A stretch of DNA of 55,526 bases from Podarcis pityusensis. Taxonomy: Eukaryota. The stretch lies in the NCBI GenBank assembly GCA_964106645.2, contig CAXKZF020000196.1, one strand, 5' to 3'. Below, one piece after another: positions 19,870-41,932 of this stretch. The notes under the pieces are model-generated. The model ran no database searches. It saw nothing but the letters and a program-made list of their open reading frames with translations, and was not told where the DNA came from. The position numbers were made by a program, and so were the translations under genes. Positions within the stretch are counted from its first letter, which is position 1; each line of letters begins with the position of its first letter.

Positions 19870-21223
19870 CTGTTGACCGGACAAAAGTCTGCATACACAG
19901 TAGGCTATGCAAACAAGCACCTCAAAACTGACGACATACGCCAGCAGTTACCGCGACTTATTCAAGGACCAACGATTGTTCGACGGCTTTGTAGGAACAC
20001 TCCAAGGGATTTTGGGGAGTCAAAGCCTGCATGTGAGCAAGATTGCCAGTTCCAGCAGCCTCTTATCAGGACAACATGCTGAAAGGCGGGTCAGACGCTT
20101 GGTACATGGCGACAATCAGCGCGCACCTTTAGCTGCGGAAACGCTGACAGAGCGGTTGACCGAGGAAGGTGCTAAGAAGCTGGCTTGGGAAGGTGAGGTG
20201 CTGCTGATCCTGGACGAGTCGGACTTACGCAAACCCTTTGCCCGCAATATGGAGCATCTGGACACGGTCAGGAGTCTAGACGGTGAGCTTATTCCTAGGA
20301 CCCTCAACGTCCTAGGTATCGGCACAAGCGGTCAGCGGTCGATTCTCTACCACCACAGCTTTTCAGCCACTACCCCCGATTTCGAGAGTGTAGGCGTTGA
20401 GTACAAGCGGGCGCTGGACAAGGTCACGAACGCCTTACGGGAGGTTGGGGCAGGCCGTTTGCTATGGGTCATTGACCGAGCCGGGGACGACCTAGCACTG
20501 ATGAGGCACCTTCATGAGGCAGGCTCTAGCTTTGTTATTCGGGTACAGCACGTTAAGCGCAAGGGCAGGCAAGGAGGCAAGAACACCAACCTTGCTAAAG
20601 TCGTAGAGGCTGCTCCTGTGCTGGGCGAAGCCACCTTGGAAAGACGCTTACTCGACCCAAGTAGTAAAAAATACCGCAACCAGCATGTGCCGGTGCAACT
20701 TGCAGGCACTGAAGTCGAACTTCGAGAAGCGCTTGGCTTTATCGTGAGCGTCGCTCAGGTCATATCACCCTTTAACGAACGTGGCTGGTTGCTCGTGTCC
20801 AACTTGCGCCTCCACCGGGATAAAGAGGCTGTCGTGCTCAAAAAAATGCTGAGCGTCTATAGGCAGCGTTGGGCGATTGAAGACCTTTTTGCTTGGACCA
20901 AAGGTGCATTGGGCTGGGAGAGTGTTCGGCTTATGTCGTTTGGGGCGCTCCGAACTTTAGTGGCATTCGCCTGGCTGGGTGCGGCGTTTCTCTACGACTT
21001 GGGTGGTGATACAGAAGATCGAGGGGTTCAGTTTCTAGCACATCTTGGGGGCGCACAAGCAGGTGGCAACAAATCAGGAATGCGTACGCTCGCTACCGGC
21101 CTTCGTCACCTTGCCTCTTATCTCCTGGTCGCTGCCTATGCCCCTCAGCTTGGCGGTGATGACGCGCTTACAACCCTTGCTTATCAGGTCTTGCCTGCTC
21201 CATGAATTTCGTCCGGTTCTCAG
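19870..21223 (+). mobile_element. IS4-like DDE insertion sequence; transposase 19907-21205
   Basis: TIRs CTGTTGACCGGACAAAAGT and AATTTCGTCCGGTTCTCAG, with flanks GATGCG/TATGCG. Motifs ILDESDLRKP, DRAGD and YRQRWAIEDLF (YREK-like). Confidence 0.85.
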
Positions 21224-25959: not shown

Positions 25960-27273
25960 TTAGGTCTTGAGCAGCTCTTTCAGATAGTGAGCCACAACGC
26001 CCGGAAAAACCCCGCCCAGGCCGGGCTCGAGTCCCCGGTAAATCCCTTCGTGGTTCTGCGCGTAAAAGAGTGGGCTGAGGGCGTCCGCCAGAGTGAACGC
26101 CCGCCGCACGGCAGGCTCGTCGTAGCGCTGAAGCCAAGGCTTTAGGTAAGCCTCAACGAGCGGACCACGTTCTTTAGCTGAACGGTCCCAAGAGTATTGG
26201 AGGGCGATGTCAAAGAAGGGGTGGCTCCAGCTGGCGTCTGTCCAGTCGAAGATCGTAAAACTGTCCCACTCCGCGAATATATTGCCGGAGTTAATGTCGC
26301 CATGAACAACCGTCTCAGGTATCCCACAGGCCGCAAGTTCGTCAAGCATCTCGAGAATACTTGGCTCGCATTTTAGTAACCCGTCCCGTTCTTCGGGCGT
26401 AAGGCGATGAAGCTCTATGCTCTCGCTGAACAGCCAGGGGATAATCTCTTTGAGTTTGTCCAGCCCCCGGTCGGCACAGCCAGCTTCTAGAAACACATCC
26501 TTATAGGCAACAGACTCGAGTTGTAACGAGCTGTAACGCCGGAACACCTCGTGTTGTGCTCTGGGGTCGGCTTCATCTAACATCTCGCCTTGAAAGGCCT
26601 CGAGTAACAACCAGCCTTGAGCGGGCTCAGTCGCTAGCACCTTCGGCGCGAGTTCGGGAAACAGCTCGGCAACCTTCGCAGTGATGCGCGGTTCGGCGCT
26701 GTGGTGATCCATGACGGCTTTGAGATACACATCTCCGTTATCAGTCTCCTGCCTCAAGACCGAGGATAATGCCCAGACTTTGAGTTGTTCAGGCTCACCG
26801 ATGGGTTCGCGTTTTAGGCCGGCGAGTTCTTCATGTAGCCAACCCTTCGCCGCTTCCAGCCACCCGCGCCGTGCCCAGGCCGGGCGTGAGGATGACACGA
26901 GGGACGGGTCGGCATCCTCGCGCAAGAGGGTCTCAAGCGTTCCACGTTCAGAGTAGGTTAGCTCACTCAGCTCCGCAAGGCTCAGCCAGCGTGCGTCTTC
27001 AGGGAGGGGGCCCGCCGTTTGTGCCTTGAGGATGTAGAGGCGCGACCGATCCTGCCCCCATTCGGGCTCGGTGGGAGAAAGCTTCGTCGGGCGGAGCATA
27101 ACAGCATCTAAAGGTATAAGGTTGCGCAGAGCCTTAAAGAGTTTCGACGTCATGAGTTCTTCAGCGCTAGTGTGGCGCGGTAGCGTTAGCGTGTCGTCTC
27201 GGGATATGCCTAGAAGTTCCGGCCTCTCCGGGTGCAGGAGGACAAAATCGTGATGATGGCGGCGCTGGCTCAT
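25960..27273 (-). CDS. Aminoglycoside phosphotransferase/choline kinase-like protein
   Basis: VYLKAV, HGDINSGNI (Brenner motif) and IFDWTDA...HPFFD. Confidence 0.8.
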   Translation of the reverse strand: MSQRRHHHDFVLLHPERPELLGISRDDTLTLPRHTSAEELMTSKLFKALRNLIPLDAVMLRPTKLSPTEPEWGQDRSRLYILKAQTAGPLPEDARWLSLAELSELTYSERGTLETLLREDADPSLVSSSRPAWARRGWLEAAKGWLHEELAGLKREPIGEPEQLKVWALSSVLRQETDNGDVYLKAVMDHHSAEPRITAKVAELFPELAPKVLATEPAQGWLLLEAFQGEMLDEADPRAQHEVFRRYSSLQLESVAYKDVFLEAGCADRGLDKLKEIIPWLFSESIELHRLTPEERDGLLKCEPSILEMLDELAACGIPETVVHGDINSGNIFAEWDSFTIFDWTDASWSHPFFDIALQYSWDRSAKERGPLVEAYLKPWLQRYDEPAVRRAFTLADALSPLFYAQNHEGIYRGLEPGLGGVFPGVVAHYLKELLKT

Positions 27274-27379
27274 CTCCACACGATACACGCTCCGGGTAAG
27301 AAGGTATTCCCTCTCGGGCAAGAACGATCTAAAGGGTATAAGACCCTACAGCACCCAATGAGGGTGATTTTCTTACTAA

Positions 27380-28307
27380 GACTCTACTCATAAACCGCCA
27401 TATTGAAGAGGATATGGGCGCAAGCGAAGTGAACGAAGGCTAGCCAGTTTGCGACCTTCTTCGCCCAACGCGTACGAATGCTGCGTCTTTTGGTAAGCCA
27501 CGACAGCGTCCTTTCGACAACCCATCGTCTCGCGGGATAAGTTGTTTCTCCCAGTCCTTTCGGCTGAGGGTTCTCGCCGCGCCGTCTATTCGGTTTAATG
27601 TGTGGGGTATACCCAGCTAGTACGACAAAATCACGAACATCGGCGGAGTCGTAAGGGACGTTGGCACATAGACGTTGTGGTTTACCAGAACGTTCGATCA
27701 CAACGGCGACCAGCAAGTCAACTGCGGCGCGCTTGTCGTATCGGTTAGCTCCGGTGATGACAACAGAGAGCGGGACACCGCGTTTATCGACTGCAGATGC
27801 AGCTTACTACCTTGCTTGGCACGGTCCGTGGGGGTGCGACCCGTAGACTCACCGCCTAGCGGCGCAGGGCAGCTTTTACTGTCTAAAAATTGCCACTTCC
27901 ATTTCACCTTACGCTTTTTGCCGTAATACTCGGCAATTCGCGCCATGACTTTCTCGAATATGCCCTCTTGTTGCCAACCCTGGAAACGGTTGTGCACGGC
28001 GCTGGTGCAGACCCCGAACCAGCTGCGCTGGAGGGCTTTCCATTGACAGCCCGTCCAGAGCACGTACCAAATAGCATTCACGACGGCCCTGTCGGGACAT
28101 GCAGGACGGCCACCTCGTTTGCTTCGCTTACGCTCCGGCAAACATTTCTTAAGTTTGCGCCACAGGGGGCGAGGAAGGTGAAAATAGCTGGTGGCTTCGG
28201 ATTTGCTAGACTTTGCCAAGGCGCACCTCCAGAACGGGACTTCAGCACTTCCATTCTTAGTCGGTGCGTCTCCTTCATTCAACCGCTAGTGGTTTATGGA
28301 TAGAGTC
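27380..28307 (-). mobile_element. IS5 family element; transposase 27384-28219, frameshifted
   Basis: NAIWYVLWTGCQW, DSKSCPAPLGGE and [11 protein letters not shown]; IRs GACTCTACTCATAAACC and GGTTTATGGATAGAGTC. Confidence 0.9.
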
Positions 28308-28983
28308 TAAAGCTTTTAACAAAATCAGCCATTTCCGCCGCAGCCTCATCCCTTACCTGCTCAGCAGTAGCTCCAGGGCGTAAGAGACGCAACAGAGTCT
28401 TATGATAGGTAACAATAAACCCGTAGAGCTGATGCTGAATCTTATTGTAGGCGCCGTTGACGGGCCACATCCGGGTTATGTCGCTGGCATAATATTGAAA
28501 ATCTGGACCACAATCAACCAAAACGAGATCACCTGATTGCAAGGGTTTATTGTTGGCATTGTAGTGACCGTACCAGGCATTGTCGCCACCAGCTACGATA
28601 GCCCTGTAGGAAACGTCTAATGCGCCATTCTTGAGATAGACGTAGCGCATCTCGGCATCAAGCTCATATTCCATTACCCCAGGCCCAGCCGCCCGCATTG
28701 CGGCAAGGAGACCCTCTGCAGCAAGCTGGCCCGAGCGGCGCAAGAGCTGCATCTCGGTCTCACTTTTCAGCAGACGCAACTTGTCGAGCATAGGCGATAA
28801 ATCGTGCAGCTCTGTCATCGGAAAGCGTTCGCGGAGGAGATTAGCGAACCGCCGCATCCGATCTAGCTGACCATCCCACGGATCCGAAATGCGTTCCTGA
28901 TGCGCGCGTTGCAGGGTGTCCCAACTTTGCATCGCACCTTCCCCAGCTCGCAACGGCGTATAAATTCTGTGTACATTCTCGAG
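28308..28983 (-). pseudogene. pepP: Xaa-Pro aminopeptidase, middle part (N-terminus lost)
   Basis: LRLLKSETE, GVMEYEL, HYNAN and DLVLVDCGPDFQYYASDITRMWPVNG. Confidence 0.85.
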
Positions 28984-29364
28984 GTTGATGTCAGCTTTTT
29001 CAGCGAGCCTGCATAGCCGAATAGCCTCTTTCGGGCTGTACCCTTGGTTCGCATCAGCTCGGAGCGAGACAGCACTACCTACAGCGTCACGAATGACACG
29101 TAAGCGTTCTGCGTCTTCATCGGGGTGACCACCAATTTTGGCTTTGAAAGCACAGACACCCATTTTCATGTACTGCCAGCATGCCTGGGCCATTTCGTTC
29201 GGTTCTCCACCTGCAATTTCGATCGACACCGCAACACGGGCTTGGTGTCGACCTCCCAAGAGAGTACTCACAGATTTAGCAAGAGATTTGCCTATAAGGT
29301 CGTGCAATGCGAGATCAATACCCGACTTGGCACAGGAATGACCACGAAAGTCTATGAGTCCCAA
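28978..29364 (-). pseudogene. Mandelate racemase/dipeptide epimerase (enolase superfamily) internal fragment
   Basis: AKSGIDLALHDLIGK...LLGG, FKAKIG and LRADANQGY; joined to pepP at CTCGAG. Confidence 0.85.
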
Positions 29365-29418
29365 AGGGCGTGACGATCACAGCGGGCTGCCATAGCTTGT
29401 TGGCGGTTCACTCAAAAC

Positions 29419-29432
29419 AACTTGACGGAGCC
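29419..29432. mobile_element. Solo IS6-like inverted-repeat end
   Basis: AACTTGACGGAGCC (reverse complement GGCTCCGTCAAGTT) resembles the 50408 end and sits beside the truncated epimerase. Confidence 0.45.
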
Positions 29433-29546
29433 GCCATAACAACAGTCTATTCAGCGACAGTAGCAACGCGAGAGGCAGCCACACAATCACGATCCTAGAT
29501 TACTCCTCTTCCTAAAGCACTCAACCGTTCACCAAGGCCTCCTTAA

Positions 29547-30623
29547 TTAGAAAGCGTAGCGTACCCGGCAGTAGGGCATTCTTTGGGCAATGAGGGCGTT
29601 GAGCAAGGCCACCTGTTGCCCTTTGAAGCCGCGTCGATAGCGCACGTTCTCCCCACCCATCTGCGAAGTTTTGGCCTCCTGGGTTTCCGGGGTCCAGAGC
29701 AGCGCCTCGGCCTTCGGATGCCAACCTAAGTTGACCTCGTGCAGCGACGCATTGTGCGTCAGGAAGATGACTTCGGCCTTTAGTTGTGCTTTCGCCTCAA
29801 TAGATAGAACGTCGTCTATCTCTGTCAAAAGCTGGGCATAATCTTCCTTCCAGCCGTCATAGATAATGACTGGGCTGAAGTTGAGGTGCACCTCGTAGCC
29901 AGCGCCGACAAAATCGTTGACAGCCGCAATTCGTTGCGATACCGGCGTTGTCCTCACATCGACAGTCTTAGCAACTTTCTGAGGCATAAGCGAAAAGCGG
30001 ATGCGTGTTTTACCCTCAGGTTTGTAACTCAGTAATCCGCGGTTGACGTACTTCGTGGCAAATGAAGCTTTTGCGTTTGGGAGGTCACGAAAAAAGGCGA
30101 CTGTGTCTTTGACGTTGTCCGAGATCAACGCATCAACCGAAACATCGCTGTTCTCGCCGATGTCATAGACCCAGTAGGACGGGTCGGTTTGGGAAGGTGT
30201 TTTCGGTCCCTGCTTGGCAACATGTCGCTCGACAGCTTTGAGAATGGGCTCGAGATTGACAAATGTCGAGATAGGGTTGGCAAAGCCTTTGCGCCGAGGC
30301 ACGTAGCAGTAGGCGCAAGCCATGGCGCAGCCGCTGGCGAAGCCCGGTGCGATGAAGTCCGCACTACGCCCGTTCGGGCGGACGGGGAAACCTTTACGAA
30401 CCCCCAGTACCAGCACTGACTTCTTAAGCCGGACCCAGTCCTTCACCAGTCCTGCATTGCCATGTAAACCAGGGATGTTCCAGTGTGATGGGACTTCGGT
30501 GAGTTCGGCGTCAGGATAGCGAGCCAAGATCTCTATGCCACGAGGATAGCGCCGCACCTCAGGCTCGAGGAAGATGTGCGAGACCTCGAAGAGGGCGGAA
30601 ATAGTACGAGCGTTACTACTCAC
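29547..30623 (-). CDS. Spore photoproduct lyase-like radical SAM protein (divergent type)
   Basis: CxxxCxxC in SADFIAPGFASGCAMACAYCYV; SFATKYVN, TRIRFSLMP and GYEVHLNFSP; GTGA overlap with the upstream paralog. Confidence 0.85.
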   Translation of the reverse strand: MSSNARTISALFEVSHIFLEPEVRRYPRGIEILARYPDAELTEVPSHWNIPGLHGNAGLVKDWVRLKKSVLVLGVRKGFPVRPNGRSADFIAPGFASGCAMACAYCYVPRRKGFANPISTFVNLEPILKAVERHVAKQGPKTPSQTDPSYWVYDIGENSDVSVDALISDNVKDTVAFFRDLPNAKASFATKYVNRGLLSYKPEGKTRIRFSLMPQKVAKTVDVRTTPVSQRIAAVNDFVGAGYEVHLNFSPVIIYDGWKEDYAQLLTEIDDVLSIEAKAQLKAEVIFLTHNASLHEVNLGWHPKAEALLWTPETQEAKTSQMGGENVRYRRGFKGQQVALLNALIAQRMPYCRVRYAF

Positions 30624-31702
30624 GTCCAGTATAGAATCCTCGCTTTGGGAAAGCGGAGCACAATCTCAGTTTCGAAGAACGCCTTCAGGTCACCCATCAC
30701 GTCTTTCGGATAGACATATTTGAGCCCGCCGAACTTGTTGCGCTTGACTGCCCTCTCGTCCTCGTCCATGTCCAAGCTTGAGTTCGGATACCAGCCCTGC
30801 AAAACCTCTTTAGAGCCAGGCGTGAAGCGGTGGCTGATAAGCTCAAAGGTAAGGTCGCAAGGAATATCAAGCGTGTACCCTAACACGTCCATGAGCGCAC
30901 CGTAATGCTCACGCCAGCCCTCGAGCTTCATAATGGGCGCGATGACAACACCAACAGGATAGCCCGCCTCCGCCAGTCTTCGCAAACCTGCGAGCCGGGC
31001 TTCGACGGAGGCCGTTCCTCCCTCGAGGCGCTGACTGACCTCTTGGGCGTTGACCGAAACACGCGCTCGGGTGTTGCGGTTATGTTTAAGCTCTAAGAGT
31101 GGATCGATAGCAGCAAACTTGCTTACCCAGCGCAGCTGCACGTTCTTCCTCGTCCCGAAGTAGCGAACACACTCGGAAAGGCTGCCAGTAAGGTGCTCGA
31201 GCGCCAGCGGGTCGGTGTAGCAGGACACCTCAAAAGTTGTAAGTCTCCCCGGCTGCTCGTAGCTCTCTAGAGCTGCTAGAACCTCAGGCAGATTGGCATA
31301 CACCCTGGTAACTGGCGGCCCAGAAAGAGAACCCGCTAGGTAGCAGTATTGGCAATGGGCTGGGCAACCCTTAGCGAGATGGAATTGCCAGTTGGCGGAA
31401 GGTGGGATGGGTTGCAGTTTCAGTATGCTGGGCGGTGCATTAACAACCGCCAAGGTTCCCTTAGCAAGTCGGTACGTCTCGCGATCGTCCTTCCCTTTGA
31501 GGGAGGGCAGTCGGTTCCCTGTTAGTGCTATTACGTCAAGACCCAGATCACGCATCCTCGTAAGCATCTGCTGCCCAAAGGGCTGCTCGAGAGCGTCGGT
31601 CGTAAAGAGGACGCGCTTGGGTCTCCAGAGTTTAGGTTTAGAATTAAAGGCATCTGAGGTGTTCGTTGAGAATCCAGGTTGGCGCACGGGAACTGAGGTC
31701 AT
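30620..31702 (-). CDS. splB: Spore photoproduct lyase (SplB-type) radical SAM protein
   Basis: PPSANWQFHLAKGCPAHCQYCYL, FEVSCYTDPLALEHLTGSL, FELISHRFT and KFGGLKYVY; AAGGAG RBS. Confidence 0.88.
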   Translation of the reverse strand: MTSVPVRQPGFSTNTSDAFNSKPKLWRPKRVLFTTDALEQPFGQQMLTRMRDLGLDVIALTGNRLPSLKGKDDRETYRLAKGTLAVVNAPPSILKLQPIPPSANWQFHLAKGCPAHCQYCYLAGSLSGPPVTRVYANLPEVLAALESYEQPGRLTTFEVSCYTDPLALEHLTGSLSECVRYFGTRKNVQLRWVSKFAAIDPLLELKHNRNTRARVSVNAQEVSQRLEGGTASVEARLAGLRRLAEAGYPVGVVIAPIMKLEGWREHYGALMDVLGYTLDIPCDLTFELISHRFTPGSKEVLQGWYPNSSLDMDEDERAVKRNKFGGLKYVYPKDVMGDLKAFFETEIVLRFPKARILYWT

Positions 31703-31911
31703 GAACTCCTTGTTGGCTAGAAACAGCCTTCCATGGCGCTATAAAGCGCCGATTTACACCCTCTATTCTAACTCTTTACGCATGTATAGAGAGGCGCGCA
31801 GCTCACAGCTTTTCTCGTGCTACGCGGGTCTAATCATGGATGCAACTTTGGTTCTTACTCGCTTCTTGGCGCACCACTATTGTCCCAGCAAAGCGATTTG
31901 AATGCGCAGAC

Positions 31912-32150
31912 ATGAAAATCACCGATGAACAGTGGACGTTGCTTTCACCGTTGATTCCCGAAGTACCGCGACGAGAAGACGGCAAAAGCCGACCCGGACG
32001 TGAGGCTCGAGGGTTACTCGAAGGTATCTGCTGGATATTGCGGACCGGAGCCCAGTCGGTTGATCTACCTGAGCGATACCCGCCGCATCAGACTTGTTAC
32101 CGACGCTTTCAAGAGCGGGTTGACGAAGGGGTGTTAAAAAACGTGCCCGA
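31912..32150 (+). mobile_element. IS5 family transposase N-terminal remnant
   Basis: ITDEQWTLLSPLIP...GICWILRTGAQ..DLPERYPPHQTCYRRFQ. Confidence 0.8.
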
Positions 32151-32289
32151 GCCTAAAAGTTTCGGCTCCGTTTTAGGATCACCATCACGTTTTCTATGGG
32201 TTTACGGCAAAGCATGTTTTGAGTTTACTGAAACGACGGTCACAAGCTTTTTACATTCAGCATCTAAGTTGCGTATCAATTGCATCACC

Positions 32290-33021
32290 TCAACGACGGT
32301 TCTCAAACCGCCATGTTTTGACAAGTGTCGGGGCATCTTTGAGTGCTCGGTGGAACGCGTCGACGGTTTTGAACTCTAGTTGCTTGAGCTGACTGGCCTC
32401 GACGCTGACCTCCAGGTCATCGGTCATAAAAGGCCACGGGTCTACCCCCAGGCTCGCATCTGCACGTTGCCAGATAAAGCTCGGCTTTCCGTCTGGCAAC
32501 GGCGTGACCTCAAGCCGCCTTTCATCGGCAGGCAACTCGCCCTCACAAAGAATCAGCGAACAACGGTCACACCACTGCATAATGCCGTAGTCACGTTCTA
32601 CATCTTTCTTTTTAAGCCTAAGAGCACGAAACCAACGTTTTTGAGCTTCTGCTTGCTCCTTGAGAAAAGCAGCGAAGGCAGGGTCGTCTTTGGCCTTGCC
32701 CTGATAGATGTAAGACGTGTGCATGGAGGTGAGGAGCGCCACGTACCGTCCTTGATACGACGCATCGTCGATCACCCGGCGTGCCTGCTCGAGCGGTGAG
32801 CCTTTGGCAATCATGAAGTCTGCAGGTGCGCCTTGAGGCGTTAACTGGGTCTCACGCAGTTCAGATTGATTGTTATCGTGCTGGGTAAGGGCAGCGAGCA
32901 GTTCGATCCAAAAAGGACTCCGGTCTTCCTCGCGCCAGTGATAAGCGAGTTTGACAGCAAGGAGGCCGTGGGCACGCTGGTAGATGACCTCCCAGCCGCC
33001 ATGCGTATGGTTGACGATCAC
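32290..33021 (-). CDS. DUF3891-like protein
   Basis: MIVNHTHGGWEVIYQRAHGLLA..LAYHW...QHD...ALLTSMH...WCDRCSLILC...VDPWPF; leaderless GTG after TATGCT. Confidence 0.75.
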   Translation of the reverse strand: MIVNHTHGGWEVIYQRAHGLLAVKLAYHWREEDRSPFWIELLAALTQHDNNQSELRETQLTPQGAPADFMIAKGSPLEQARRVIDDASYQGRYVALLTSMHTSYIYQGKAKDDPAFAAFLKEQAEAQKRWFRALRLKKKDVERDYGIMQWCDRCSLILCEGELPADERRLEVTPLPDGKPSFIWQRADASLGVDPWPFMTDDLEVSVEASQLKQLEFKTVDAFHRALKDAPTLVKTWRFENRR

Positions 33022-33181
33022 CGTTCTAGCATAAGGAGTGCAAAGGAGGGCCACTAGCCATATTAATTACAGTCTTGCTGACCAAGAACTCTGTTAGCGT
33101 GCCTTGTGCCTACCGTGTATAGCCTTAAGGCAATAATAAAGACGTGGCTGCAACCACGTCTTTAAGGGGTAAGATTTAAAG

Positions 33182-33649
33182 TCAGCCATGAGAGATTTCG
33201 ATTTTCCGAGCCTTGGCACTTGCAGCTTTAGGTAGGGTCGGCGTCAGCAACCCTTCGTGTACGCGCGCATCGACGTGGTCGAGATCTACGCCCGTAGGTA
33301 GGCTCACTGTGCGACTGAACTGTCCCCTGGGAATAGCTTGTAACCAGTAACATCGTTCCTGGTTGTTGCTGACGTTAGGTAAGGTACCGCTGATGGTCAG
33401 CTGCCGTCCCTCGATACTTACCTCCAAGTCCTGTGTCTGTACTCCAGGCACGGCCATCTCAAGCACGACGGTGTCACCCGTTTCGTACAGGTCGACCGGG
33501 TACCCTTGAGCCCAGGACGAGGTACTGAGGCGGGGAGAGGCGAGGTGTTCAAAGAGCTGATCGAACTCTTTAAACATGCCTGCTGGAGAAGCGAGATCCC
33601 AGCCCCGCACGGGTACCGGACGAGCGTTTTGAGCGCGAACAATAGCCAT
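33182..33649 (-). CDS. Hsp20/alpha-crystallin small heat shock protein
   Basis: PVDLYET...MAVPGV..DLEVSIEG..LTISG...GQFSRTVSLP...GLL..LPK; GGAGG RBS. Confidence 0.92.
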   Translation of the reverse strand: MAIVRAQNARPVPVRGWDLASPAGMFKEFDQLFEHLASPRLSTSSWAQGYPVDLYETGDTVVLEMAVPGVQTQDLEVSIEGRQLTISGTLPNVSNNQERCYWLQAIPRGQFSRTVSLPTGVDLDHVDARVHEGLLTPTLPKAASAKARKIEISHG

Positions 33650-33881
33650 CACTGAAACCTCCCTGTAGGTTTTAGGCATCTGCCTGAAAAGGAATACAAT
33701 ATATGTGCGCGTGCTTGTCAAGTATCCTACCCTTTGCATCGTGGATGCCCCTGAAAGTTTTTGTGCCTCCAAAATCATTTCGCTGTTATTTCAAGCCTCA
33801 CATTGTTGGTTCGTTCCTACAGTTGATAAGGCTCAGCTTCTATAATGTGAGGGTGACTCACAGAGTCAGAAGAGGGGGAGC

Positions 33882-34790
33882 ATGTACCTACGTATCGATA
33901 AACTTCAGTTTGAACTGCCCAAACCCAAAGATCAGAACCCCAATGGAGCCGCCGCAGTCCAGGAACTCATGGGTGGACGCTTCGGTGAGATGTCTACATT
34001 GATGAATTACACCACCCAGTCGTTCAACTTTCGTGGAAAGAAAGCTCTCAAACCTTATTATGAGCTCATTTCCAATATCGCTGCAGAAGAGTTGGGTCAC
34101 ATCGAGCTTGTCGCTGCCACGATCAATGCTCTCTTGGCAGGTCCTGATCCAGTGGAGCAGGAAGAGCCAGTAGATCCGTCCACGTCCCCTTACAGCTATG
34201 CTCAGGACGTGCGCAACACCCAGCAATTTATTGCTGGTGGTCCTGGGATGATGGTACAGGACTCACGTGGCGCACCCTGGACAGGCGATAACGTCTTTTC
34301 CAGCGGGACGCTTGTGCTTGACCTTTTACATAATTTCTTTCTGGAAAGTGGGGCTCGGCAGCAGAAGCTAAGGGTCTATGAGATGGTTGATGATCCTGTG
34401 GTCAAAGCCCTTACAGGCTACTTGCTTGTCCGGGGTGGAGTGCACCAAGTTGCCTATGCCAAAGCGCTTGAAACTCTTACGGGAGTAGCGGTCGAGAAGA
34501 TGCTGCCGATCCCGAACATTCCAACCCAGAAGATTCCCGAATCCAAAAAGCTGATGGATCAGGGAGTTCACCTCAAACTTTACCGCTTTAGCCCGACAGA
34601 TTATACCGAAATGGGCAAGATCTGGAAGGGCACGCACCCTGACGATGGTCAGGAGGTAAGTGTAACCGATGAGATTCCCGACGGCGCGCCAACCATGGAT
34701 GGAGGGCACGACTCGACCGCTTTCTCGCCTGATTACGACATGGCCGAAATTATGGAGATTGCCAAAAACCTTCATGCCAAGATGAAGTAA
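33882..34790 (+). CDS. Manganese catalase family protein
   Basis: QELMGGRFGEM, EELGHIELV, NFFLESGAR and RGGVHQVAY; GGGGGAG RBS. Confidence 0.93.
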   Translation: MYLRIDKLQFELPKPKDQNPNGAAAVQELMGGRFGEMSTLMNYTTQSFNFRGKKALKPYYELISNIAAEELGHIELVAATINALLAGPDPVEQEEPVDPSTSPYSYAQDVRNTQQFIAGGPGMMVQDSRGAPWTGDNVFSSGTLVLDLLHNFFLESGARQQKLRVYEMVDDPVVKALTGYLLVRGGVHQVAYAKALETLTGVAVEKMLPIPNIPTQKIPESKKLMDQGVHLKLYRFSPTDYTEMGKIWKGTHPDDGQEVSVTDEIPDGAPTMDGGHDSTAFSPDYDMAEIMEIAKNLHAKMK

Positions 34791-35134: not shown

Positions 35135-36020
35135 GAGGCTGTTTGAAAATCACTTCAAACTAAACGAAGGGGTCGAACAAGCAGCTAAACGCTTGGTCAT
35201 AAGATCAACCATCGCCAGGTAGATGAAGGTTTCACTTGTTTCGGGCAGCCGCTCATAGTCTTTACTCAAGCGGCGGTAGTTGCCGAACCAGGCGAGTGTG
35301 CGTTCGACGACCCACCTTTGCGGCTGTACTTGGAAGCCCCAAACGCCGTGTGGGCGTGTGACAAGCTCAAGCAGACGCCGATAGGTAGCAAATATCGTGT
35401 GACTGAACTGCTTGCCTCGATAACCTTCATCAGCTTTGATGGAGCTTAAGGCAAGGCAGTTTGCCAGCAAGTGCACTCAAGAGCTGTTTCAAGCCTGCCT
35501 GGTCAGACACGTTCGCTTTGGTGACGACCACCCTGAGGAGCAGACCCAGGCTGTCAACCAGCACATGACGTTTGCGTCCATTAACGTTCTTGCCACCGTC
35601 GTAAGCGTTGCCTTGATGAACCGTTCCTTTGACCGCTTGGCTGTCTACGATCCCGATGCTCGGGTGCTTGTTGCGTCCAGCCCGCTTCCTCAAACGCTTA
35701 CGCAGCCACTTGTTGATTCGTTTCCAGATACCCTCGTCGCGCCATTTGGCAAAGTGATAATAGACGCTTTGCCAGCTCGGTAAGTCATAGTGCAGGTCGC
35801 GCCACTGCACGCCATTCCTGAGCACATACCTGATTGAGTTGACAACCTCGCGAAGCTCTAGCCCCCGTGGTCTCCCTCGCTGAGCTCGCTGGCAGAGCAC
35901 TTTTTGCATGAGCGGTTCGAGTGTCTGCCATTCTGCATCGCTCAGATCGCTGGTGTATCCTGGCTTTGCTTTACCCATTGCCCTACCAAATCACTTGGTG
36001 GGGCTTTTTCAAACAGCCTC
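35135..36020 (-). mobile_element. IS5 family (IS1031-like) element; transposase 35150-35978, frameshifted
   Basis: TIRs GAGGCTGTTTGAAAA and TTTTCAAACAGCCTC with TA flanks; YTSDLSDAEW, DSQAVK, GRKRHVLVD and RWVVERT. Confidence 0.92.
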
Positions 36021-38009: not shown

Positions 38010-38157
38010 GGGTCAAAAATGTGTGAGCTGGTACGCCGTACTTTTGTCACTATTTGTAGCCCTTGCGTACTATTTTTTGGTGTGATGGACAATCTTAATT
38101 AGCTTAAGTTCACTCCGTCTTACAATTTCTGTGGGTCACTACCCCAATGATGCAAGC

Positions 38158-39615
38158 ATGACATCGACAAGTGGCGACGTTGCTAGTGACCGGGTTCAGC
38201 TCGAGACGATGATCGCTGGCATTAGCATTGGCGTTATAACGGTAGACACGGATGGGACGCTGCAGTACGCCAACCGCGCTGCTTTAGCAATGCACGGGGT
38301 AGAAGACTTAGCCTCTTTGGGCCACACGACTAAGGCGTACCGAGAGCAGTACGCTTTACGAGACCTTCAGGGCATACCGCTTCCTCCCAGCGCCTACCCA
38401 CTTGATCGTCTGCTCTCGGGCGACAGTTTTGACGAGCTGCTGGTTCAGCTCCTAGTCAACGGCAATACGGTGGTTTACCAGTGTCGCGGCATCAGAGTAC
38501 GAGATGCACGCGGCGAGATTGATTTCTATGCCCTTTTTCTTGAAGACGAAACAGAGCAGTACGATGCTGAGCAGCGCTTTGAGCGTACGTTTACAGCGAA
38601 TCCAGGTGCGGCGCTCATCCACCGCTTGTCCGACCTAAGGTTTATCAAAGTGAACCCGGCATTTTTGGAGATGACTGGGTTTGGACGTGAAGACGTTATC
38701 GGTCGTACCGCCTACCAGTTTGACGTTTTAGGCAGAGTGGAGAAACGCGAACTTGCGCTCGAGCAGTTCCACGAGGGCAAAGTTATCCCGCCGATGGAGT
38801 CTTATGTCTCCACCCGATCGGGCGGAGACAAGTTCGTACTGCTGGGTGGACAACCACTCGAAGTGGGCAATGAGCCCTGTATGCTGCTGACCTTTGTCGA
38901 TTTGGACGCTCGCAAGAAAGCCGAGGATGCGCTGCGCCAGAGCGAAGAGCGGTTTACCAAAGCGTTTAGACTCGCACCGGTTGCAGGTGTTATCTCTTCA
39001 ATCAATGACGGTCATATTCTTAATATCAATGATGCCTTCAGCCAACTGACAAAATACCCACCAAGTGAGGCGGTAGGTCGCACTACCGCTGAGCTAGGGT
39101 TATGGAAAAGTGAGGGAGAACGGGTTATATCTACTCTGCTTAAGAGCCGCAGGAGATACCAAGACCTGGAACTTAAACTCTATACCAAGGCAGGAAACGT
39201 CTGCGATGTTCTTGTTTCAGCTGAAACCTTAACCATCAATGATGAACCTTGTGTCTTGTGGATGTGCCAGGATGTGACTGAGTGGAAGCGTAGCGAGGCC
39301 GAGCTCGTCGAAGCTGTCGATCAGGTGATGCGTGGCTCCGACTGGCTCAGCACCTCTATCACCAAACAGCTGATGGCGGTCAAGGGTAGGAAGCCCATGC
39401 CGCAGGTGGCAGCTAAGCTTGCTTTGCTTACAGCTCGCGAGCGACAAGTGCTCGACCTTGTATGCCAAGGCGTAAGCGGTTCGGAGCTCGCTGAGCGGCT
39501 TGGAGTCTCAGTCAACACGGTGCGCAATTACCTCGCTCGCTTGTACAAGAAGTTAGATGTGCATTCACGGGCTGAACTTGTTATTTGGGTCAAGCGAAAT
39601 GAACTCTACGTATAG
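38158..39615 (+). CDS. Multi-PAS-domain LuxR-family transcriptional regulator
   Basis: Three PAS repeats (YANRAA, VNPAFLEMTGF..EDVIG, INDAFSQLT...EAVG) plus LTARERQVL...LGVSVNTVRNYLARLYKKLDVHSRAE. Confidence 0.92.
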   Translation: MTSTSGDVASDRVQLETMIAGISIGVITVDTDGTLQYANRAALAMHGVEDLASLGHTTKAYREQYALRDLQGIPLPPSAYPLDRLLSGDSFDELLVQLLVNGNTVVYQCRGIRVRDARGEIDFYALFLEDETEQYDAEQRFERTFTANPGAALIHRLSDLRFIKVNPAFLEMTGFGREDVIGRTAYQFDVLGRVEKRELALEQFHEGKVIPPMESYVSTRSGGDKFVLLGGQPLEVGNEPCMLLTFVDLDARKKAEDALRQSEERFTKAFRLAPVAGVISSINDGHILNINDAFSQLTKYPPSEAVGRTTAELGLWKSEGERVISTLLKSRRRYQDLELKLYTKAGNVCDVLVSAETLTINDEPCVLWMCQDVTEWKRSEAELVEAVDQVMRGSDWLSTSITKQLMAVKGRKPMPQVAAKLALLTARERQVLDLVCQGVSGSELAERLGVSVNTVRNYLARLYKKLDVHSRAELVIWVKRNELYV

Positions 39616-39675: not shown

Positions 39676-40312
39676 GAGGGTGTTATGCACTCGCGGTGAG
39701 TAGTAGGCTTGGCTCTAAACGCGCTTACAATACGGCTGCGAAGGCCACGAAATGTAGCCCTACCAGCACCTGCGGCATACGTTCGTAATCTTTGACGAGC
39801 CGTCTAAAACGTGCCAGCCAAGCGAATGAGCGCTCTACGACCCACCTCCTAGGTAGAAGCACGAACCCTCGCTTAGTCTGCTCGTGCTTAACGACCAACA
39901 ACGCGATGCCCTGCTTAGGCGCTGCTGTTCTGGCCTCCTCTCCGGTGTAGCCCTGGTCAACCCACGCGACTTCTACGCTCTCACCCGTGGCTTCCTGCAC
40001 GCGTTTGGTAAGTTCTGCCACTTGTTTGCGTCATTGTCTCGAATACCCCCGCTTCAAGCCAACGCCTACCTTGCTGATACACCGCTGCCCATGGTGGAAA
40101 ATCAGCGGGCAGGAACCGCCAGGGTACACCTGTACGAGTAACGTACATCAAGCCGTCGTACACGCGCCGCAAGTCGTGTTTGCGTTGGGGCGCAGCCTCG
40201 GTAATGAGGGTTAGGTAGGGCGCAACAAACGCCCACTCCGCCTCGCTGCTATCGCTGGGGTAGACTTTCTTTGCCATCCTCTAGCTTAGCCGCAATAGTT
40301 CATAACACCCTC
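39676..40312 (-). mobile_element. Internally deleted IS5 family element
   Basis: TIRs GAGGGTGTTATG and CATAACACCCTC at a CTAG/TA target; YPSDSSEAEW and RRWVVERSF are present but the middle of the transposase is missing. Confidence 0.88.
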
Positions 40313-40649: not shown

Positions 40650-41932
40650 TGATACTGCCCCGCTAAAACGGAGACCGAGTTAAGCCTCTAGTGCCAAAAT
40701 GGAGGCAATATGAAAGAACGCAGGGTCTACACCGCAGAGTTCAAGCGTGAAGCGGTACGGCTGAGTGAACAAGCCGACGTCAGCGTGGCTCAGGTCGCCC
40801 AGGAACTGGGCGTGTCTGACTACAGCCTCTACAAGTGGGGCAAACAAGCGAAGGCTGGGGGCGAGTTGGCATTCCCTGGGGAACGGCAAGGTCGCTCTAA
40901 CGGCGGAGCCCTAAAGGATTTCCTACGGTCACAGCAGGAGAACGTGCGGTTGAAAAAAGAACTCGAGCGGGTGACGCAAGAGCGTGATGTTTTAAAAAAA
41001 GCGGTCAAGTTCTTTGCGGGGGAAAGCAAGTGAGGTACGCCTTCATCGAAGCGCACCGAAGCACCTGGTCCGTCGGTCTGATGACTGGCGTGTTAGCGGT
41101 GTCGGTCAGCGGCTTTTACGCTTGGTTACGGCGGGGGCGAAGTAAGCGAGCCGTAGAAGACGAGAGGCTCACCGAGAAGATCGTGATGTTTCACTGCAGG
41201 AGCCGCTTTACCTACGGTTCGCCGCGCATCCATAAGGACCTGAAAGCTGCCGGGCACAACGTTGGGCGCAAGCGCGTGGCTCGTCTGATGCGGAATGCGG
41301 GTCTTCAAGGTAAAACGAAGCGTCGGTTCAAGACCACCACGAACTCTCAACACTCGCGCCCTAAAGTGGAAAATCTGGTCGCGCAAAGCTTCGACGTGGC
41401 AATCCCCGACACCCTCTGGGCGAGTGACATCACCTATGTCCCCACGCACGAGGGCTGGTTGTATCTGGCTGTGACGCTCGACCTTTTCAGCGAACTAGGC
41501 CCAACGGGCCGGGCTTTGCCCGTCAGACTAACAGATGATCTGACGCTTGCAGCCTTAGCGATGGCGACGCAGCAGCGACCCGATTTGGCGGCGCTTACGC
41601 AGCATTCGGATCAAGGCAGCCAATATGCTAGTCAGGCGTTTAGGGCCGAGCTGAAGGCCAATCACATCACCCAAAGTATGTCGGGTAGAGGAAACTGCCA
41701 CGACAACGCGGTTGTCGAGTCGTTCTTCGCCACCCTCAAAACCGAGGAAGTCGAGGGCGCTCCCTACGAAACCCGCCAGCAGGCTAAAACCAGCATCTTC
41801 GGCTAGCTCGAGGGTTTCTAAAGCGCCAAGCGCAGACACTCTTCCCTGGGGTTTCTATCTCCCGACGATTTTGAGAGGGTACACTTCGCTCAAGCTGCTT
41901 AACTGCGACTCCGTGAAAACGGGGCAATATCA
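40650..41932 (+). mobile_element. IS3 family element (orfA 40710-41033, orfB 41030-about 41900, degraded)
   Basis: TG...CA TIRs TGATACTGCCCCG and CGGGGCAATATCA, with TCA target duplication; YTAEFKREAV, WASDITYV, HSDQGSQY and DNAVVESFF. Confidence 0.93.

Follow-up and report, generated by a model that had tools for sequence, protein, structure and literature searches.

Spore photoproduct lyase (SPL) is a textbook DNA repair enzyme of the radical S-adenosylmethionine (SAM) type that is generally associated with spores. Two genes for SPL-like proteins, here named SPL1 and SPL2, lie together in contig CAXKZF020000196.1 of the Podarcis pityusensis assembly GCA_964106645.2, with a gene of the DUF3891 family upstream of them. 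The whole stretch of 55,526 nucleotides that was analysed is referred to as the window. Operons, ribosome-binding sites and insertion sequence (IS) elements give it a bacterial character over its whole length, and an animal assembly has probably taken in a bacterial contig here; soil and plastisphere metagenomes contain near-identical DNA. Both SPL proteins cluster with Trueperaceae sequences in similarity searches and in a phylogenetic tree, and this affinity, the only basis for the placement, would put the host near Truepera/Trueperaceae. The locus thus raises the question of what two such enzymes would do in a lineage of non-spore-formers, and whether the three genes work together. An earlier sequence-only reading had taken them for a DNA repair module of desiccated vegetative cells, in which the second paralog may act on a different lesion or with different chemistry, or be a heterodimer partner, and DUF3891 may process nucleotides or DNA ends.

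The interpretation favoured in this study, with a confidence slightly better than even, is that SPL1 and SPL2 form a two-gene operon with its own promoter, that SPL1 would be a spore photoproduct (SP) lyase and SPL2 a separate enzyme, and that DUF3891 would be a gene apart from the operon.

The SPL1-SPL2 operon

Three intact minus-strand open reading frames (ORFs) were read in the studied part of the window (Table 1). At the junction of the first two, SPL1 ends in TGG ACG TGA and SPL2 begins with GTG AGT AGT in another frame. The junction TGGACGTGA is identical in Truepera radiovictrix DSM 17093 (L176; contigs and loci from other sources are designated by L and a number) and in contig L177, and the order SPL1-SPL2 with this junction is common to T. 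radiovictrix, L177, L001 and L002. Direct reading of the junction and of the cluster motifs, CPAHCQYCY in SPL1 and CAMACAYCY in SPL2, confirmed the earlier description of two radical SAM genes coupled by a GTGA overlap and both carrying CxxxCxYCY. SPL1-SPL2 is therefore a real two-gene operon, conserved within the lineage.

Table 1. Features of the SPL1-SPL2 locus and its flank in the window
Feature	Coordinates	Strand	Description
Terminator-like hairpin with T run	29423-29436	minus	about 110 bp past the SPL2 stop; consensus match only
SPL2	29547-30623	minus	358 aa, TIGR03886 'spore photoproduct lyase family protein'
GTGA overlap	30620-30623	minus	SPL1 stop TGA shares bases with SPL2 start GTG; read directly
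SPL1	30620-31702	minus	360 aa, full-length SPL homolog; its clade occurs in non-spore-formers
Promoter-like region of the SPL1-SPL2 operon	31765-31820	minus	proposed from conservation in an alignment of upstream regions
IS5-family transposase remnant	31918-32142	plus	N-terminal DUF4096 only; inside ORF 31840-32379, residues 27-101
DUF3891 gene	32290-33054	minus	254-aa ORF; probable true start GTG 33021 (243 aa)

Alignment of the upstream regions revealed a conserved block at 31820-31804 and a -10-like TAGAAT at 31770-31765, followed by an AAGGAG ribosome-binding site directly before the SPL1 ATG at 31702. The block resembles AGACG-N3-AAAA-N-GTGT, lies about 33 nt 5' of a -10-like TAnAnT, and precedes SPL1 in the window and in five relatives (L002, L081, L083, L176 and L177). 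Because it sits between the IS remnant and SPL1, the operon is considered to have its own control region, in which the block could serve as an operator or as a -35 region of unusual type. A scan of 29300-33300 for the sigma-70 consensus gave no canonical promoter. No further copies of the block were found in the window, in a weak search whose degenerate pattern also missed the window's own divergent copy. Terminator-like sites such as the one past SPL2 number 6 in the region, against 4.1 expected.

Two families of SPL-like proteins

The phylogenetic position of the two proteins was analysed in a maximum-likelihood tree of 39 sequences, comprising 19 members of TIGR03886, 17 of the SPL1 clade and three SplB proteins of Firmicutes. 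A branch with 100/100 support splits the TIGR03886 sequences, SPL2 among them, from the SPL1 clade together with the Firmicutes SplB. The SPL1 clade (99/100) forms a separate group beside the Firmicutes SplB; within this half of the tree the long Clostridium branch is placed uncertainly. The comparison with characterised SplB that the sequence-only reading had called for thus separates the paralogs clearly: SPL1 and SPL2 are divergent enzymes of the SPL fold belonging to different families.

SPL1 matches the Pfam SPL model PF20903 with 294 bits and the SPL of Geobacillus thermodenitrificans (Gt; structure 4FHC) with 230 bits (E 3e-67) over residues 24-360, and shares 38.6% identity with the protein annotated as SplB in Bacillus velezensis. 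Its nearest relatives are found in Truepera (75-79% identity), followed by those of many cyanobacteria and Herpetosiphonaceae (64-68%). It is matched by 6,122 database clusters at E <= 0.001, a number that may overlap with the corresponding one for SPL2, the two proteins being homologous.

Residue roles described for the Gt enzyme (PMC3467042) were transferred onto the alignment of this study. In that enzyme the cluster Cys, Tyr96 and Tyr98 serve the Fe-S cluster and the radical relay, Cys140 is the H-atom donor, Lys174 and Ser195 bind SAM, Arg193, Glu268 and the C-terminal Tyr339 hydrogen-bond the 5'-dihydrothymine, Arg273 and Lys309 hold the intra-lesion phosphate, and Tyr305 forms the tip of a hairpin; in Clostridium SPLs the donor Cys is relocated to Cys77, an alternative H-donor position equivalent to Gt Ser76 (PMC3467042).

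All of the catalytic and binding residues are present in SPL1. The CxxxCxxC motif with the flanking Tyr (Gt Tyr96 and Tyr98) occurs in 17/17 sequences of the clade, as does the Cys of FEVSCYTD, which aligns with Cys140 of Gt and Cys141 of Bacillus SplB. In the larger SPL1 set this Cys was counted in 77 of 80 sequences, a count that is partly circular, one of the retrieval patterns having contained it. In the alignment SPL1 keeps the SAM binders Lys174 and Ser195, and the lesion contacts Arg193, Glu268, Tyr339, Arg273 and Lys309 are unchanged in it and throughout its clade (17/17). SPL1 also has the length of the SplB proteins of Bacillus, Geobacillus and Clostridium (TIGR04070). It differs from them in its lineage of non-spore-formers, in having no SplA regulator gene beside it and in carrying Phe instead of Tyr at the hairpin tip, as its clade does; the clade has Ile at the position of Gt Ser76.

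That SPL1 is a genuine spore photoproduct lyase is most likely, because it is homologous over its full length to an SPL of known structure, retains all catalytic and lesion-binding residues and belongs to a clade that joins the Firmicutes SplB. It would then reverse 5-thyminyl-5,6-dihydrothymine as in Bacillus, through H-abstraction by the 5'-deoxyadenosyl radical, beta-scission and return of an H atom from the conserved Cys.

SPL2 scores 586.6 bits on TIGR03886 (cutoff 437.55) over model positions 1-346 of 346 and 149 bits on PF20903, and is 27.5% identical to SplB and 22.9% to SPL1. The only strong matches of its AlphaFold model in the PDB are SPL entries, which align over the whole chain (TM 0.76/0.79, E about 4e-22). 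At E <= 0.001 SPL2 is matched by 5,669 database clusters, with the possible overlap mentioned above. Carriers of TIGR03886 include Trueperaceae, Deinococcus, Rubrobacter, Methylobacterium, Microvirga, Myxococcota, Curtobacterium, Nonomuraea, Chloroflexota, Gemmatimonadota and some cyanobacteria.

With SplB SPL2 shares the fold, the three cluster Cys and the equivalents of Tyr96 and Tyr98; in the alignment SPL2 and TIGR03886 also retain Lys174 and Ser195, Arg193, Glu268 and the equivalent of the C-terminal Tyr339. The differences are concentrated at the H donor and the phosphate contacts. The Glu of YDIGENSD occupies the same column as the donor Cys140/141, so that alignment to 4FHC and SplB bears out the earlier observation that the first paralog has the Cys141 equivalent and the second lacks it. 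This Glu is found in 18 of the 19 aligned TIGR03886 sequences and in 75 of 80 species representatives, with Cys in 2/80; the representatives were retrieved with patterns that exclude the residue sites counted. The position of Arg273 is taken by Thr (18/19 aligned; 76/80 species by motif), that of Lys309 by Asn (18/19), and that of Ser76/Clostridium Cys77 by Asn (19/19). A donor Cys therefore stands at neither the Cys140 nor the Clostridium Cys77 position in the aligned family members, the exceptions at Cys140 being the two among the 80 species. The hairpin tip of Tyr305 is variable in TIGR03886, its conserved aromatic residue gone. A fourth invariant Cys, Cys352 of SPL2, lies four residues before the Tyr339 equivalent in a motif present in 78/80 species. 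The assignments in the C-terminal part of SPL2 are probable, not certain.

The two Pyxidicoccus members L034 and L054 carry Cys in place of the Glu at the Cys140 position (WAYDIGCNSD), and these natural 'revertants' are potentially useful for mechanistic work.

Published homologs

Genes of this kind have been reported before as 'splB homologs', namely DGo_PA0134 of Deinococcus gobiensis and Deide_3p02150 of D. deserti (PMC3314630, PMC2669436). Both were found to be of the TIGR03886 type, with an identity of 62-63% to SPL2 against 23-25% to SPL1, and the Deinococcus proteins share all family-invariant residues with SPL2. The TIGR03886 gene stands alone on the Deinococcus plasmids and in most species, whereas in the window and in other Trueperaceae it lies in an operon behind an SPL1-type gene. 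On plasmid P1 of D. gobiensis (L173 4974-8733) it is followed by co-oriented genes for a DEAD/DEAH helicase and a DUF790 protein, and on plasmid 3 of D. deserti (L174 3708-5996) it is found two genes away from ddrOP3, which encodes a DdrO paralog.

UVC induces an 'SPL family protein' in Curtobacterium aetherium, and SP repair in desiccated non-spore-formers was proposed on that occasion in 2025 (PMC12029717). All Curtobacterium loci that were fetched are of the TIGR03886 type, and the UVC-induced gene of this stratospheric isolate is probably a TIGR03886 gene and not a true SPL. A service of SPL-like genes to non-spore-formers under desiccation and UV has thus been proposed in print before (PMC3314630, PMC12029717). 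In the literature searched, no demonstrated activity of any TIGR03886 member was found, and neither the division into two families nor the changed active site of TIGR03886 was described.

Possible substrates of SPL2

SPL2 probably differs from SPL1 in substrate or chemistry, because the exchange of Cys for Glu is combined with the loss of both binders of the intra-lesion phosphate; on this point the earlier proposal of a different lesion or chemistry finds support. SPL2 would keep SAM cleavage and the residues that hydrogen-bond the thymine/dihydrothymine base, while working without the Cys140 H donor and without the Arg/Lys clamp on the phosphate between the lesion nucleotides. It may act independently on a related pyrimidine lesion of different geometry or chemistry, candidate substrates being lesions from dried, UV-exposed DNA.

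The alternative that best withstands this evidence, though unlikely, is that SPL2 is redundant with SPL1 as an SP lyase of the intrastrand lesion, with the H donor moved to Cys352 just as Clostridium moved it to Cys77. The near-universal Cys352 lies close in sequence to the Tyr aligned with the lesion-binding Tyr339 of Gt, the equivalents of Tyr96, Tyr98, Arg193 and Glu268 are kept, relocation of the donor in Clostridium is a documented precedent (PMC3467042), and in both Pyxidicoccus members the canonical position holds a Cys. However, redundancy leaves the loss of both phosphate clamps and of the aromatic hairpin tip unexplained, and two enzymes for one lesion within a single operon, in several lineages, would be unexpected.

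A more specific possibility, considered rather improbable, is that TIGR03886 repairs methylene-bridged thymine-thymine adducts that have no joining phosphodiester, for example inter-strand or non-adjacent SP-type cross-links. In the passage of PMC3231322 that cites Douki et al. (2003), such cross-links are given a high yield in dehydrated A-form DNA. The retained base-binding residues and the missing clamp on the intra-lesion phosphate would both suit such adducts. Desiccation-tolerant bacteria that neither sporulate nor package their DNA with proteins of the small acid-soluble spore protein (SASP) type would accordingly depend on SPL2, whether or not a classical SPL accompanies it, and DUF3891 would be an occasional accessory nuclease of the HD type.

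A comparably low probability is given to a substrate other than DNA, for instance RNA or a free derivative of a pyrimidine or nucleotide, in which case SPL2 would stand beside SPL1 only through a shared stress regulon. The loss of the DNA-phosphate contacts and the variable hairpin tip would suit such a substrate, as would the very high conservation of the family across phyla. In the same direction points the lack of a conserved neighbourhood: clustering of the flanking ORFs at the 80 species loci gave no conserved TIGR03886 neighbours beyond genus level, in clusters polluted by shadow ORFs of high-GC DNA. Against a non-DNA substrate stand the helicase and DUF790 genes adjoining in D. gobiensis, the nearby DdrO in D. 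deserti, the reported UVC induction in Curtobacterium and the recurrence of the tandem with SPL1 in two phyla.

The DUF3891 gene

The third gene matches PF13030 with 214.1 bits (gathering threshold 24) over model positions 2-219 of 219. Its translation more likely begins at 33021, since nearly all homologs in an alignment of 32 sequences start at MIVN/VIVN. Compared with the copy in the sibling strain L082, its codons show 18 synonymous and 8 non-synonymous differences, and the gene looks intact and under purifying selection.

As the sequence-only reading had noted, the gene is co-oriented with the operon and lies upstream of it beyond an IS scar; both points were confirmed. The IS remnant, on the opposite strand, and about 590 bp separate DUF3891 from SPL1. 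The remnant scores 76 bits on Pfam DUF4096 and 69.8 bits on the NCBIfam model transpos_IS5_3 (cutoff 110; model positions 3-77 of 258), and no second copy of it was found in the window. Nucleotide homology to L082 (94%) is confined to 32300-33084, which is the DUF3891 gene itself; L082 has the same gene with different flanks on both sides, and loose contig ends from related soil samples match the flanks in L082 and not those in the window. Because this homology stops at the borders of the gene, the adjacency of DUF3891 to the operon is attributed to a recent local rearrangement in an IS-rich region. DUF3891 would accordingly be a separate gene, put beside the operon by an IS-associated event.

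Linkage was examined at 80 species loci anchored on TIGR03886 and at 80 metagenome loci anchored on SPL1. DUF3891 was present in 0/80 of the former and beside SPL1 in 1/80 of the latter (L123, where the two are convergent), and the SPL1-SPL2 pair occurs without it in T. radiovictrix, L001, L002 and L177. Among nine independent contexts of DUF3891, an SPL1-type gene stands immediately upstream in one (L081, in tandem); the others contain genes for topoisomerase IB, endonuclease V, HU, SDR/polyketide-cyclase proteins and Mn catalase, or unrelated genes. In L178 (5443-7400), L164 (5229-6732) and L179 (2294-4556), DUF3891 lies directly before a gene for bacterial topoisomerase IB, divergent from that for endonuclease V and two genes from HU. 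In the window, genes for an Hsp20 protein, a Mn catalase and a PAS-PAS-LuxR regulator follow just past DUF3891 (33182-34790, 38131-39615), and L163, an unrelated contig, likewise has a Mn catalase gene near DUF3891.

Regarding the fold, the H...HD...H...D spacing described earlier is real: His29, His59-Asp60, His112 and Asp163 (in AHG, QHD, SMH and CD) are invariant in the 32 homologs. In a structure model of good quality (predicted local distance difference test, pLDDT, 89; predicted template modelling score, pTM, 0.87) they are placed on successive helices. Comparison of the model by VIA-align gave the HD-GYP protein 9RBZ (Z 6.7, 147 residues aligned), the Cas3 HD domain 8WTH (Z 6.6, 134) and PgpH (Z 5.7, 149), together with PPX/GppA, HDDC2, MESH1 and RelH; all matches longer than 120 residues belong to the HD superfamily. 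These matches are in the grey zone, with Z 5.2-6.7 (all below 8) and root-mean-square deviations of 4-5 Å. An Atlas search gave a TM of 0.63 to a Cas3-family cluster.

The proposed HD-like nature of DUF3891 finds support in the invariant motif and in the long but weak structural matches, and none in sequence profiles or Foldseek. Foldseek against the PDB gave nothing at E <0.001 with the model, a profile search against PDB sequences and a protein-atlas feature search gave no match and no usable match, respectively, and no HD family was among the Pfam matches of the 32 members at E up to 10. A phosphotyrosine phosphatase matched in a single-sequence PDB search (E 0.019) and was judged a chance hit. 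With the HD phosphohydrolases and nucleases (9RBZ, 8WTH, PgpH 4S1B, HDDC2 4L7E, MESH1/RelH) DUF3891 shares the H...HD...H...D motif; it differs from them in a beta domain added at the C-terminus (roughly residues 180-254) and in having no sequence-profile link. As a best guess, and a fairly probable one, DUF3891 is a metal-dependent hydrolase of the HD-like kind. It was not mentioned in the literature searched.

That DUF3891, SPL1 and SPL2 make up one DNA repair module, with DUF3891 processing nucleotides or DNA ends, is improbable, somewhat more so than the alternatives discussed for SPL2. The proposal gains from the three differing arrangements in which DUF3891 stands beside SPL1 (the window, L081 and L123), from its adjacency elsewhere to topoisomerase IB, endonuclease V and HU, and from its HD-like invariant motif, along with the presence of the Cas3 HD nuclease among its long structural matches. 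It is contradicted by the near absence of DUF3891 from the sampled loci and from the vicinity of the pair in T. radiovictrix, L001, L002 and L177, by the intervening opposite-strand IS remnant and the conserved upstream block that SPL1 has for itself, and by the other context of the gene in the sibling strain. The recurrence of SPL1 with DUF3891 exceeds chance for so rare a family, which suggests a loose association through DNA damage or stress and no module.

Linkage of SPL1 and SPL2

The co-occurrence expected for the three genes was found in part: the SPL1-SPL2 tandem recurs in Trueperaceae and in Motilibacter, while DUF3891 is not a fixed neighbour. SPL1 lies in tandem just upstream of SPL2 in 3/80 TIGR03886 loci, belonging to two Trueperaceae and Motilibacter deserti, and in three further loci of Microvirga it is <=5 kb away on the opposite strand, one of these copies being merely a fragment. 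In 74 of the 80 there is no SPL1 within 10 kb. Among the loci anchored on SPL1, SPL2 is adjacent in none, 8 kb off in one and absent within 8 kb in 79, and in a Trueperaceae genome of 5.8 Mb the two genes are apparently unlinked. The SPL1 and SPL2 of Motilibacter fall in subclades other than those of the Trueperaceae. The pairing is thus found in two phyla yet is exceptional, and because each gene mostly stands alone, SPL1 and SPL2 are regarded as two independent, usefully co-expressed enzymes rather than as an obligate complex.

An SPL1-SPL2 heterodimer with a non-catalytic or auxiliary SPL2, the other partnership suggested earlier, is very improbable, and an obligate one unlikely: a 4-bp overlap that couples translation and is conserved in Trueperaceae, with the same gene order in every tandem found, would fit it, but the great majority of loci carry either gene alone, and SPL2, with its complete radical SAM cluster motif and SAM binders, looks catalytic.

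Surrounding DNA

The region around the locus is rich in IS elements and partly decayed (27384-28282, 35150-35978, 39716-40274, 19907-21205, 41030-41806 and 28294-29364). Three IS5-type elements, their ORFs split, lie there together with a DDE_Tnp_1 transposase and an rve integrase, and in one chimeric ORF mandelate-racemase fragments are joined to the C-terminal half of an M24 peptidase. The greedy coverage by ORFs is only 0.76. A minus-strand ORF of 453 aa at 25960-27321 has a single Pfam match, at residues 305-401, to the C-terminal portion of the APH-type phosphotransferase domain, and its long N-terminal part gave no match.

Weighing and implications

Several observations weigh against the reading of the locus as an operon of an SP lyase and a separate second enzyme with a further, separate gene beside it. 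SPL1 reaches 313.3 bits on TIGR04070, the NCBIfam equivalog model of SplB, and thus stays under the cutoff of 400. The mapping of residues in SPL2 comes from an alignment at 27% identity, and the SPL2 model, moderately confident as a whole (pLDDT 68), is poor around the cluster loops and the active site (<50 at residues 80-116 and 142-161), so that the Thr and Asn assignments could be shifted. TIGR03886 members are 62-77% identical across about ten phyla, a degree of conservation that would also fit a substrate other than DNA. Finally, DUF3891 also stands beside SPL1 in two other contigs of differing arrangement (L081 and L123), so that a loose functional link may exist.

An SPL of classical appearance with every catalytic residue intact is widespread in non-spore-formers, more than 6,000 clusters having matched SPL1. 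Its sister family TIGR03886, uncharacterised and also large, was matched by more than 5,600 clusters; its active site is systematically rewired, and many of its carriers are tolerant to radiation or desiccation. The 'splB homologs' of desert Deinococcus belong to this second family and are not true SPL, and the function credited to them is an assumption. In T. radiovictrix, which is cultivable, the two enzymes are encoded side by side, which makes a direct comparison of their substrates practical.

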